Assembly (NCBI RefSeq): GCF_964204865.1
Contig: NC_135262.1
Span: 12,276,001-12,340,000 of the forward strand
Length of the DNA stretch: 64,000 bases
From: Styela clava
Taxonomy: Eukaryota
Reading direction: 5' to 3'
A program made the position numbers and the translations under genes. The notes beneath the pieces are model-generated. The model ran no database searches. It was not told the DNA's origin and saw only the letters and a list, made by a program, of their open reading frames with translations. Numbering within the stretch: position 1 is the first letter of the stretch; every line of letters starts with the position of its first letter. This document shows positions 59,421 to 64,000 of the stretch, one piece after another.

Positions 59421-59817
59421 GGCATCCAACGAGTCGGGTATATTCGTACACTTTATATCAACTGCATCGAAAGGCATGACCGCATATGAATATTGAGTTG
59501 ACTATACATGCCTATGACATTGGGTATGTATGTAGGCCTACATTACTTGAATGGCTGTATATTTATATTGAATTGGCTGATTACAATCACTAATACTTTT
59601 ATATTTTCCATTTCGTTTTTATATTACACATGCAGATCTCACAGACCTACCTCCAAAATCACCACTGGGGTTTGGTAACCACTGCCATAAATCTAAAATC
59701 CTTCGCGTATTCAAGATTTCCCTATTTTGACTACGAAGAAAAAAAGACGGTCTTTACAAGGTTTTGATTTTGTTGATTTATTTCCCCAAAACATGGAGGT
59801 TTCAAAGTACGCAATGC

Positions 59818-62800
59818 TTATGCACCATAACCGTCGATTGCGTGAATAGGTTCCTGAATTGCATCAAGGTAGCAGACGCCGCCAAAATCACAACTCGATG
59901 CTGAGGGTATTGCATTATAATATGCTGCAAAAACAGCCCCTGCACCTTGCCTCAAGCGATTGTTATCACATGAGTATGGATCAACATTGCAGCAAGCTTG
60001 AACGTCGGCAGCATCACTACACTCTGGATCGACCTGAAAAATATCAATATGGAACAAAGCGTAAGACTTAGACTACATCACTGTTGATGATGGCTAATAA
60101 TGCCTTGTCGAGTAACGTCCCTAATAATTGATTGTGCTATCTGTCTTGTTCTAACGTGTCGCAGTTGCGTCACTCGCTAGTATGTTCTGTTGCTGTAGAC
60201 ATCTTATGTTGTGTGTTATGCTGGTGTAATGAAGAAGTGTAAGCGTATTCAGTTGAACCCTTATTCTATAATAGCTTGGGTGTAGAACTTAACATATAAC
60301 CAAGACATTATTAACAATCACTCTCTCATAAGTTCTTCTAGAATCTAGAGTTTGAACATTTGAGAATAATTGAAAGTGTCGTCTCCTGCGATGAAATATA
60401 CTTACATTTGCGTAGGTGTTGTCACTGCTGCATGCCCATAACATACTGCCGCAAATGTCAGCATTGTTTGCGTCGTCTTTGATACGGCATTCGGGATTTG
60501 GTGCATAACCATCATGTAACACATATTTGCGCATAGCCGTACCGCCGAAGTTGCATGAATCTCCATCGTTTATTTGTTCGTCGTATGCAGCGAATACTTC
60601 GGTTGCCAACGCTAAAATAAATTTTGATTCGGGTAAGACGTAAACTCAATATTGTCACTTTATAGCTACCCATTTCCATACAACGCTGTGTGAACCATAT
60701 TTTCATCAGGCACGAAGATTCTGATTTCAATAATGCTGTTATAAAAATATTCTATTATGCGGCTTGGTTTTATTTACTTACTTTGTACTCTAGTAATTTC
60801 ACAGCTTCTTGTCGCGCAGCAATTCAATAGTTCGGAAGTACATTGGGCACTTACATCAGCCTCCAATTGATTATAACAAGCCCATTCCACGTTTCCACAT
60901 ATATCGCCGTAAGACGCTGTAGGCTTGACACCACATTTGAATGTCGATATGTCCTAAAAGTATCGTTTGAAAAAATCATTAATTTCTGAACCAATTGCTA
61001 TGAAATATTCAGCGGGGAAAGATTGTATTTTTCGCTAGAAGTCTATCACTTTTTTTATTTAAAAAAATTCTGCGGGTTCTATGAGATTCGTTTTTGTTGT
61101 GCGATGACGTCATTAAAAATTTCACACCTTGTGGCGGTTTCACTTTCCGATTGTTGCGTTCTGGTAGTCAGTCAAAGTCGGGAAGGCTACGGTATCGGTA
61201 CTGTAAAAGGTTTTATACTCGCATTGCTTCCTTTTGGCCATATATTTGAGCAGTGTTTCTTGTTTTTAAAAGTCAGGAAGTAAATTTAATTTTTTTCACA
61301 GAGATAGTCACACAGTCCCGATCCGAGTAAAGCTATATAAAGCATTATCTAAACAGTTACGGCTTACAAACCTCTAGTGGATAAGCTCGTACGTAGTCGA
61401 CCTTCATTTCAGCATCCGGATAATTCCAGGTAGTGGTTGGTGTTGGATCCGTAACGTAATGTCCCCCAACAGCAACATTAAGAATTATGTAAAAGTATTG
61501 ATTGAAAGGATCACCTATAAAAAATTACTGTAAATAATCACAAATGTTTAAATGTCGGTGACATATGTGTGATAGTGAACAGAGAAAAATATAATATATA
61601 CCTGTTTTAGTCTATTAAAACGAAGTAAGATATTTTTTTCCAATTTCAAAATGGTTTTGAATAGGCTATTATTATATTAGGCTATCCTACACTTCACACT
61701 TAGTAATGCTTGAGTTCCGACTATTTGGTGACTGGTGATGACATTATTTATTTGGTCAAAAATTTCAATCTGACCTTTATTTCCGTACATCCATCCTACT
61801 TGTCTGTCAAGATTGTGCATATGATAAGGCTTGCCATCCAAGCTGTATACCTACGAATTCAATTCAGAGTTAGTAGATCACCGTGATACGTTACCTTAAT
61901 TCATGTCATTGCCCTAACTTAATTGCAAATAATTTGAATATGGCTACAGATACTAAAAAAATTTATAAGATCTTAACGCGCGTCTATTGAAACAAAAATA
62001 TTTTAAACCCAAAATCGGGGGCATGTGACCCACCTTGATGCAACTTAGTACTCGGATGATCATTCGTGAGTATTACGGTAGCATATGAAGTTTTTAACAA
62101 AAGTATATCTAGACAATTTTCAAACCAACTTTTAATATGCCAATAGTATTCTCCCGATGGAAAAAATCAAGTAGAGGCAAAATGTGAGGGTAGCTCAAAA
62201 TAGCTTTGATTTGAAAATCAATGCGGTAATTGCAGCATAAGTATTTGTCCTAATTTTCTATACGCACGACGGTTCATTAGAAAATGTTCCACATTCTCTT
62301 AAACATTACTAAAATCGAAATGGCCAGTATTATGATACCCCATTCCAGTGGCTCTTAACCTTTCCGAGCCTGCTGAACCCCTGCGCCATTTGGCATGCTC
62401 CCGCCGAACCTCATCGTACTGAACGGTTAAAATTAGGAGCCCAATTCTAACTTTATAAAAAAGAAGCTAATTTCGTGCAAGGTTATAAAAAATGAACATT
62501 ATGGAAGAATCTCAGATACCAATACCACGTGCGGAAATAGCTATTGGCTTGTCACAATAGTGTCGGCGGCGGGGAAAAAGATGTGTTTTGTTGTATAACC
62601 TTATTGGGTGAAATGGCAAAAATGGATAAAAAATTAGCAACTTTGAAAATCCAAGATATGATTATATGCCTCAAAAACGTTGGTAGCTAAAGTCAGTCGT
62701 TTCTTAAACTTCAAACTACATTGAAATGCGTATAAAGCTTTTGACAATTGTTTTATTTTACAGAAATAGAGATATGATACGGTACGGATGACGATAATTT

Positions 62801-64000
62801 TAAGCAAAGCTCTGCAATAAAGTATTCTTTGTTGCAAATTTATCACCTAGTGAAATTCATACACGCTCTGATTTTGCAGTGATTTATGTACATCTTCAAT
62901 CATTCGCAAAACTGAGGTATTTAAAACTGAGTTAAATTTTATTAGTACGTTAGATTATGAATAGGTGTTACGCAAATATTCAGCCTGAAAATCCTTGGTT
63001 TGTCATAACAACCCAGGATATTTCAAAGCCATAAACAGAAAGAATCTTAAAGCACTATCATAGATAAGTACAAACACCAAAGCGCACGACATATGTGGAG
63101 ATATGAGCTTTTGATGAAACGTACTAGAATCCAAGAACATCGACAGGTCCACTAAAACTTATATCTGCGCAAATCTATACACACAGCTAAGCTTATTTAT
63201 CGATTGTTGGACGTATAGGTTTGAATATCTCCTATGAACTACCAGTATAGTTATTTTTGCATAATTAGTAGACGAGGTAATAGTGAAGTCCCGTAATATA
63301 AAAATGTTTCAGAGGACTTTCGGAAGACGATCGATCGATCGTACCCCTTGAACAGCTCCACCGAACCCCAGTGGTTCGATCGAACTCAGGTTAAGAACCA
63401 CTGCCCTCTTCCGTAAAAGGATGACCGTACATTTGATACCATGCGTATATCCGCGGGTTCAATCTATATCCGGATGCTAAAACCTACGGGTTAGGGTTAG
63501 TATGGGTTCAAATATCCGTGAAACAAAAAAATTCCCATAGGTGCAATAGTATGCAGTTGCAATTGTCGTGGGTTCAAATGTACGGGAACCCTGTAAAGGT
63601 GCTTATTTAATTAAACGGCAATATCCCGTCAGCAGTCAAAATAAAATTGTGTCCATTAACCAAAGTAAACGCGTCAAAGTCATAATGCTGTTTTCTATAG
63701 TGCGAATATTGTACGATACCAAGCTTGGCCATTGTATGTATATAAGTTGTTTATTCCATTCATCAACGCAGGATCGCCAAATTTTCGAAAGGACTTGGAC
63801 GTATGAGTGAGCAAATGTTAATGAAATCAAACACCTACCAACTCTGTTGGTGTCCAATCAAGTTGATAAACGTGATATTGGTCAATTGAACCGTCAATAT
63901 CGAGATCGCCACTGTTCTCATAGTAATGGTAATCACAACATGGAAGATCTCCAAAATGAATTGTACTCTGGATCTCAGCCATGTTGTCGCCTCTAGCTTC
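59818..64000 (-). CDS. GH16 beta-1,3-glucanase / glucan-binding protein with two C-terminal X8 (CBM43)-like Cys-rich repeats; 3' exons 63839-64000, 61775-61850, 61372-61514, 60782-60953, 60406-60611, 59818-60033; 5' part beyond window
   Basis: EARG...STIHFG...YHVYQLDWTP...PFNQYFYIILNVAVGG...EMKVDYVRAY is the laminarinase-type GH16 C-terminal half. Two repeats follow: C.VKP.AS..DICG.VEWAC...ATEVFAAY...SCNFGGTA and CRIKDDAN..DICGSMLWAC...VFAAYY...SCDFGGVC. Splice phases are consistent. Confidence 0.88.
62346..63403. mobile_element. Non-autonomous hAT element in GH16 intron
   Basis: TIR cagtggctcttaacct / aggttaagaaccactg; ccgaaccc subterminal repeats; degenerate 8-bp TSD ccccattc / ccctcttc. 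Confidence 0.8.
63419..63591. mobile_element. Small MITE containing GGGTTAGGGTTAG
   Basis: Imperfect TIR ggatgaccgtacatttgatacca / tgggttcaaatgtacgggaaccc, with gtaaa on both flanks. Confidence 0.6.

Follow-up and report, generated by a model that had tools for sequence, protein, structure and literature searches.

A GH16 laminarinase-type gene of the ascidian Styela clava with two divergent X8/CBM43-like modules

The stretch of 64,000 nucleotides analysed here (the window; G000:C17:12276001–12340000 of a 377-Mb Styela clava genome assembly) contains the greater part of a minus-strand gene, present in one copy in Styela and orthologous to the tunicate glycoside hydrolase family 16 (GH16) subfamily 3 endo-β-1,3-glucanase (laminarinase) gene. 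Downstream of its catalytic domain, the encoded protein carries two cysteine-rich repeats which, judging from profile comparisons, are most likely very divergent relatives of the X8/CBM43 carbohydrate-binding module with three extra cysteines, although they are not members of that family by the Pfam criterion. The GH16 domain and the repeats are transcribed as a single mRNA, and the architecture of a GH16 domain with two repeats is conserved in ascidians. The gene model (RefSeq LOC120333148) and the case of the tunicate GH16_3 genes as candidates for horizontal gene transfer (HGT) are already public. What appears to be new is the conserved tandem of X8-like modules in ascidians, a variant that contains a CC pair, and the closest parallel to this architecture, namely genuine proteins of amoebozoan-type protists that combine GH16 with tandem X8. 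The searched literature contained no report linking CBM43/X8 with tunicates, invertebrates, other animals or amoebozoans.

The gene has nine exons, of which exons 5–9 and the 3′ part of exon 4 lie in the window, and the remainder was read from a 10-kb stretch extending past the window end (L004; window position = L004 position + 59499). The original prediction, made from the window sequence, had proposed six in-phase exons, and all six were found on the minus strand at the implied coordinates with GT–AG borders and matching phases. Together the nine exons total 1371 nt, or 456 codons plus a stop, and their exon-by-exon translation is identical to a database protein encoded on the same contig (P0001, 456 aa). 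The 90%-identity cluster of P0001 includes Styela clava XP_039256442.1, annotated as ‘glucan endo-1,3-beta-glucosidase-like isoform X2’ (456 aa), as well as isoform X1. The features are given below in window coordinates unless L004 is named; joints refer to RNA-like contigs of sequencing run X1.

L004 5249..5198, minus strand: exon 1, with the ATG and a hydrophobic signal peptide (beyond the window).
L004 5077..4912, minus strand: exon 2, GH16 (beyond the window).
L004 4802..4674, minus strand: exon 3, GH16 (beyond the window).
63839..64000, minus strand: exon 4, 3′ part, GH16, its first codon here being the last Glu of EIDICE; identical to P0001.
61775..61850, minus strand: exon 5, GH16, 76 nt; joint with exon 4 in X1, identical to P0001.
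61372..61514, minus strand: exon 6, the last GH16 exon, 143 nt, ending ...VDYVRAYPLE; X1 joint to exon 7.
60782..60953, minus strand: exon 7, 172 nt, the N-terminal two thirds of repeat 1 (Cys 1–7); from the sequence reading and X1 joints.
60406..60611, minus strand: exon 8, 206 nt, the end of repeat 1 (VFAAY...SCNFGG), the linker and the start of repeat 2; from the sequence reading and X1 joints.
59818..60033, minus strand: exon 9, the C-terminal two thirds of repeat 2 and a short tail; stop codon TAA at 59820–59818.
59763..59817, minus strand: 3′ untranslated region with an AATAAA-like signal inside, as far as the RNA-like contig reaches (L004 264).
60517..60947, minus strand: repeat 1, protein residues ~262–348, split by intron 7; X8-like module, from alignment and model.
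59863..60498, minus strand: repeat 2, protein residues ~355–442, split by intron 8; X8-like module, from alignment and model.

Exon 4 begins at window-equivalent 64049 (L004 4550) and contains WPKSGEIDICE, which places the glutamate at 63998–64000 as the last residue of the EIDxxE catalytic motif, just as had been proposed from the window edge. The signal peptide that was to be sought upstream together with this motif was also found. A phase-0 intron lies exactly at the boundary between the GH16 domain and the repeats.

Splice joints bounded by CT..AC, or GT..AG in the minus-strand reading, occurred in the X1 contigs exactly at six of the eight predicted introns, confirming the joints of exons 9/8 (seen in run X2 as well), 8/7, 7/6, 5/4, 3/2 and 2/1. 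Introns 6/5 and 4/3 were bridged by none of the listed contigs, and a DNA-like run from the same organism showed none of these joints. X1 and X2 were taken as RNA by guess, but it is difficult to account for canonical splice joints in their contigs in any other way. The X1 joint 2351|4340 (L004) corresponds to exon 5/4 and the joint 1454|1873 (L004) to exon 7/6; because the latter unites the last GH16 exon and the first repeat exon within one contig, the fusion is carried on one mRNA, in agreement with the original prediction that both parts belong to the same transcript. Among solved structures, bacterial laminarinases resemble the GH16 domain most closely, as might be seen if microbial or protist DNA had reached the assembly through contamination or misassembly. 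However, the gene sits inside a 20-Mb contig with a GC content of 0.37 as in its surroundings and contains eight spliceosomal GT–AG introns, of which intron 4 includes an animal interspersed repeat. RNA-like runs labelled with the same organism contain its spliced form, and it has orthologues in three ascidian orders. Contamination was rejected on these introns, on the RNA data and on the orthologues, its probability being close to nil.

The GH16 domain was detected by Pfam (PF00722) at residues 52–252 of P0001 with 76 bits against a cut-off of 22, and exons 3 and 4 alone scored 49.1 bits for GH16 in a genome scan. The GEIDICE motif in exon 4 provides E128, D130 and E133, which are invariant in four orthologues. 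The structure matches of a whole-protein model were solved GH16 enzymes, in keeping with the GH16 β-jelly-roll fold, and the best solved relatives by sequence were laminarinases (3iln, 4crq and 7wwc; E 3e-38, and 6e-48 with a profile). Bacterial GH16_3 laminarinases (3iln, 4crq, 7wwc and 8xph) have the motif and the fold in common with the Styela domain at 33–36% identity, but they carry other carbohydrate-binding modules (CBMs) or none, and lack both introns and X8-like repeats.

Orthologues with a GH16 domain and two repeats were found in Clavelina lepadiformis, in Ciona intestinalis (LOC100181198) and in one further species, and span three ascidian orders. They are 50–55% identical over the repeat region (52% for LOC100181198), and neither the catalytic residues nor any of the 16 repeat cysteines vary among them. 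Ciona KY21.Chr9.350/.347 belong to the same orthologous family; Ciona carries tandem paralogues, whereas the Styela genome has one copy, in which the repeat exons match only themselves and no repeat paralogues were detected. Other GH16-like loci in this genome match only around the catalytic motif (G000:C5:24076110–24076728; C6:13707521–13708532; C10:9621476 and 9631382); none has Cys-rich repeats, and these loci may be of the classical metazoan GH16 type.

Each repeat consists of ~88 residues with eight conserved cysteines in register in the four ascidian orthologues, and repeats 1 and 2 share 34–43% identity within each species. AlphaFold2 models from the four-orthologue alignment show each repeat as a strand, a helix, a short helix bearing the CC pair, a long helix and a strand, with a predicted local distance difference test (pLDDT) score of 80–91 for repeat 1 and 72–89 for repeat 2. 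In the orthologues, repeat 2 is followed by two further cysteines, the ninth and the tenth (…GGxC…PLxC…). In the Styela tail (window 59818–59875), C439 is kept and its partner is lost (…PIHAI…), leaving an unpaired cysteine.

The repeats had been likened to X8/CBM43 in the original prediction, and their general plan resembles that module (PF07983; solved examples are 2jon and the CBM43 of GH72 glucanosyltransferases, among them 8pe2). Both are ~80–90 residues long, both follow a pattern of an N-terminal Cys strand, a W-x-C helix, a central Cys, an aromatic-rich long helix and a C-D/N-F-G-G end, and both are appended to a β-1,3-glucan-active catalytic domain. The repeats differ in their scores below the Pfam cut-off and in three extra conserved cysteines, one after strand 1 and two forming the CC pair in an extra short helix. 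In addition, the host organism is an animal, and the catalytic domain beside them belongs to GH16 and not to GH17 or GH72. X8/CBM43 modules are regarded as plant and fungal.

Profile–profile alignment (hhalign) of the eight tunicate repeats with 16 genuine X8 domains gave a probability of 83% and a P value of 8.5e-6, with a score of 34.5 over 72 columns. This score lies ~8 standard deviations above those of column shuffles (11.7 ± 2.9, maximum 26.3; 0 of 200 reached the score), the reversed alignment scored 17.8, and the alignment is full-length and co-linear. A larger set of 29 X8 domains gave P 8.4e-5, while a different Cys-rich carbohydrate-binding module, used as a specificity control, gave P 0.53. 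With a hidden Markov model (HMM) of true X8 domains, five of the eight repeats scored above the 99th percentile of 1596 composition-matched decoys. The Pfam X8 profile spans positions 2–75/76 on exactly one repeat unit in three orthologues, and X8 was the sole recurring non-GH16 family among the Pfam matches. In a search of all 177,635 distinct PDB sequences with a profile covering the repeat's C-terminal two thirds, the top match was 2jon_A (14 bits, E 0.49), a 101-residue ‘Beta-1,3-glucanase’ chain aligned in register with the repeat profile. We take 2jon to be the C-terminal domain of Ole e 9, the archetypal CBM43 structure. Each of the five X8 consensus cysteines within the alignment coincides with a cysteine of the repeat, which has three more, and an upstream cysteine of the protist X8 domains has no partner in the tunicate repeat. 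As aligned, the CC pair is a conserved addition relative to genuine X8, and the three extra cysteines are this pair and one residue after strand 1; the proposal that the pair marks a distinct X8 variant thus fits the comparison. Styela repeat 2 is also co-linear with the genuine X8 domain of the protist-type transcript L016 (27% identity, E 0.004).

A number of results weigh against this relationship, and several of them favour another explanation, namely a Cys-rich fold peculiar to tunicates and without relation to X8, with a convergent C...WxC...C...YY...CDFGG pattern, which would bind the cellulose or chitin of gut linings or mucus, or would only stabilise the enzyme in the gut. The Pfam X8 gathering cut-off of 25.7 bits was not reached by exon 8 (15.9 bits) or by the orthologues P0004 (13.3), P0005 (15.2) and P0006 (15.1), and whole P0001 had no X8 match in Pfam. 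In the exon-by-exon Pfam search the exons were too short to inform, save for the weak X8 match of exon 8. Repeat 2 accounts for most of the hhalign signal (P 4.6e-5), a profile of repeat 1 only is a weak match (P 0.006), and an HMM of the tunicate repeats missed the genuine X8 of L016. The three extra cysteines per repeat also set the repeats apart. A phmmer search with exon 9 against 1.84e9 representatives returned three clusters only, comprising the gene itself and two exon-like fragments, and ESM Atlas searches with the repeat region and with a single repeat gave no usable match. Whole-protein fold searches were filled by GH16 and jelly-roll matches, and no match to the CBM43 fold was obtained; a repeat-only model, built from a 77-aa partial piece of the marine contig L080, was poor (pLDDT 61), matched generic helical proteins only and is no evidence against a CBM43 fold.

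The sub-threshold scores are put in scale by genuine X8 domains of different lineages: the L016 domain matches the CBM43 of the 1,3-β-glucanosyltransferase 8pe2 with only 17 bits (E 0.06), and therefore scores of this order are normal between X8 lineages. An unrelated fold is also at odds with the full-length co-linear profile alignment far above shuffles, the match of all five consensus cysteines, the lack of similarity to another Cys-rich CBM, the CBM43 chain as top PDB match and the genuine X8 domains that the nearest protist GH16 relatives carry in the equivalent position. We consider an unrelated fold unlikely and infer X8 homology proper, together with glucan binding, for the repeats. 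The X8/CBM43 assignment stands on profile–profile similarity, the end-to-end profile span and the 2jon_A match, and falls short of formal Pfam membership. If the repeats are true functional X8 relatives, the family would extend to Metazoa with a new eight-cysteine subtype. They would also supply a second, linked marker for the tunicate GH16_3 transfer that can discriminate a bacterial from a protist donor, as well as a compact, naturally tandem β-1,3-glucan-binding unit on a laminarinase, which bears on the digestion of algal storage glucan by filter feeders. If they are not X8, they would represent a tunicate-restricted Cys-rich fold of narrower interest.

The protein is probably a secreted digestive endo-β-1,3-glucanase that is anchored to particulate or insoluble β-1,3-glucan by its two X8-like modules. 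The signal peptide predicts secretion, and a secreted protein with an intact E-x-D-x-x-E motif would most likely hydrolyse β-1,3-glucans in the gut lumen; the substrates would be laminarin and chrysolaminarin of ingested algae and diatoms as well as the wall glucan of fungi and yeasts. By analogy with CBMs in other glucanases, such anchoring would most likely increase the substrate concentration near the enzyme. The digestive role is suggested by work on Ciona, in which the orthologues were assigned to GH16 subfamily 3 by dbCAN (E 1e-72) and the GH16_3 genes were found to be expressed almost only in the stomach, leading to the proposal that they digest planktonic β-1,3-glucan (PMC13390645, Genome Biol Evol evag170, July 2026). 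That study names the GH16 domain only (IPR000757) and mentions no CBM, cysteine, carbohydrate-binding or C-terminal modules.

We regard as improbable the alternative that the protein acts mainly in immune pattern recognition or defence, through glucan sensing or fungal-wall lysis, rather than as a digestive enzyme. Other animal proteins derived from GH16, namely GNBP/LGBP and factor G, act in glucan sensing, and insect GNBP/βGRP carries CBM39. Sensing GNBPs typically lack an intact catalytic triad, whereas the E-D-E triad here is intact and invariant. The classical animal GH16 proteins (insect GNBP/βGRP and horseshoe-crab factor G α) are likewise animal proteins of the GH16 fold related to β-1,3-glucan, but they belong to another subfamily, have other binding modules and are in many cases catalytically dead; the Styela domain is of the laminarinase-type GH16_3, not the metazoan GH16_4 type, and its modules are X8-like. 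Protection from pathogens has also been raised for the tunicate GH16 genes, against which stands the stomach expression of the Ciona orthologue in the same study (PMC13390645). Between the two functions first proposed, glucan degradation or glucan sensing, digestion is thus more likely than sensing.

The closest architectural parallels came from protists. L016 (P0019), recovered in a metagenome scan, is a complete intron-less transcript with a signal peptide, a GH16 domain that shares 39% identity with that of tunicates and an X8 domain that is genuine by Pfam (40.7 bits). In related transcripts, genuine X8 domains stand in tandem, up to three per protein, with summed scores of 104–114 bits. 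The named relatives of these GH16+X8 transcripts are from the amoebozoan Planoprotostelium fungivorum, with one protein annotated as GH16 plus X8. Several mites have GH16-only versions. The amoebozoan-type proteins (P0054 of Planoprotostelium fungivorum; P0014–P0016, P0019 and P0020) share with those of tunicates a signal peptide, a laminarinase-type GH16 domain (39–41% identity) and C-terminal X8 modules, one to three in number, but their X8 domains pass Pfam (39–114 bits) and have six cysteines and no CC pair. The claim of an unusual architecture holds in that the X8-like modules appear not to have been described, and is tempered by the existing RefSeq model, the 2026 GH16_3 HGT paper and these protist proteins. 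P0017 (a Logan transcript, 591 aa) joins the same X8 triplet of protist type, on the N-terminal side, to another catalytic core (PF11790), and the X8 cassette has therefore been shuffled among glucanases in that protist lineage.

The marine contigs L080, L015 and L018, all three with introns, group with the tunicates. L080 encodes a GH16 domain and a single tunicate-type repeat (HMM E 4e-11), with an intron at another position, after ‘YDSQ’. L015 (653–1900; Ga0115011_10077079), a relative with 46% identity in GH16, has CC-type Cys-rich repeats on the N-terminal side of its GH16 domain, connected to it by a poly-Thr linker, an order opposite to that of the ascidian gene. The metagenome scan returned L016, L080 and L015, and the exact contig of the P0013 transcript was not among its results.

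An unrooted IQ-TREE phylogeny of 62 GH16 domains resolved three groups. The first comprises 27 bacterial-looking sequences, made up of 25 metagenome contigs with P0131 and P0132 (support 100/95); the second unites the tunicates with L015, L018 and L080 (100/99) on a long stem of 0.58; and the third holds the remaining eukaryote-type sequences (94/96), within which the X8-bearing proteins and Planoprotostelium are nested as a clade (100/99). The three groups meet at one node of the unrooted tree, and therefore the tree names no donor. For the same reason, a split between bacteria and eukaryote-type sequences was rejected as a sign of a eukaryotic donor. In an approximately unbiased test, a union of the tunicate group with the X8-bearing clade was not rejected (p 0.23; ΔlnL 13.9), and a single origin of the GH16+X8 fusion would be possible, though it is not favoured.

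The introns within the repeats are not equivalent in position, lying after residue 316 (phase 1) in repeat 1 and after residue 385 (phase 0) in repeat 2. Together with the differently placed intron of L080, these positions would fit intron gain after acquisition and duplication. The tunicate GH16_3 genes have been put forward as HGT candidates whose donor was left ‘unclear’ (PMC13390645), and the horizontal origin with later intron gain that was proposed for this gene agrees both with that study and with the non-equivalent introns. A possible but doubtful extension is that the whole GH16 plus tandem-X8 cassette was acquired, already fused, from an amoebozoan-like protist donor, after which the X8 domains became the CC-containing animal variant and introns were inserted at non-equivalent positions. 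Such an event would be a multi-domain transfer from a eukaryote to an animal, and the first CBM43-type module in Metazoa, as far as found. Taken as a whole, the original prediction is supported.

RefSeq isoform X1 (P0008, 490 aa) is ~98% identical to P0001 outside an alternative first exon at L004 5500–5622 on the minus strand (G000:C17:12340999–12341121), which gives the protein a non-secretory N-terminus in place of the signal peptide; none of the RNA-like contigs in the runs mapped covers this exon. Intron 4 contains a very high-copy interspersed repeat (window ~63370–63720), with a summed contig depth of ~1e5 in the DNA-like run and no match in Rfam or among tRNAs. Its core of ~170 bp recurs at dozens of genomic places with 90–94% identity, and forms a tandem array at C16:9498092–9508067 with a spacing of ~2452 bp.

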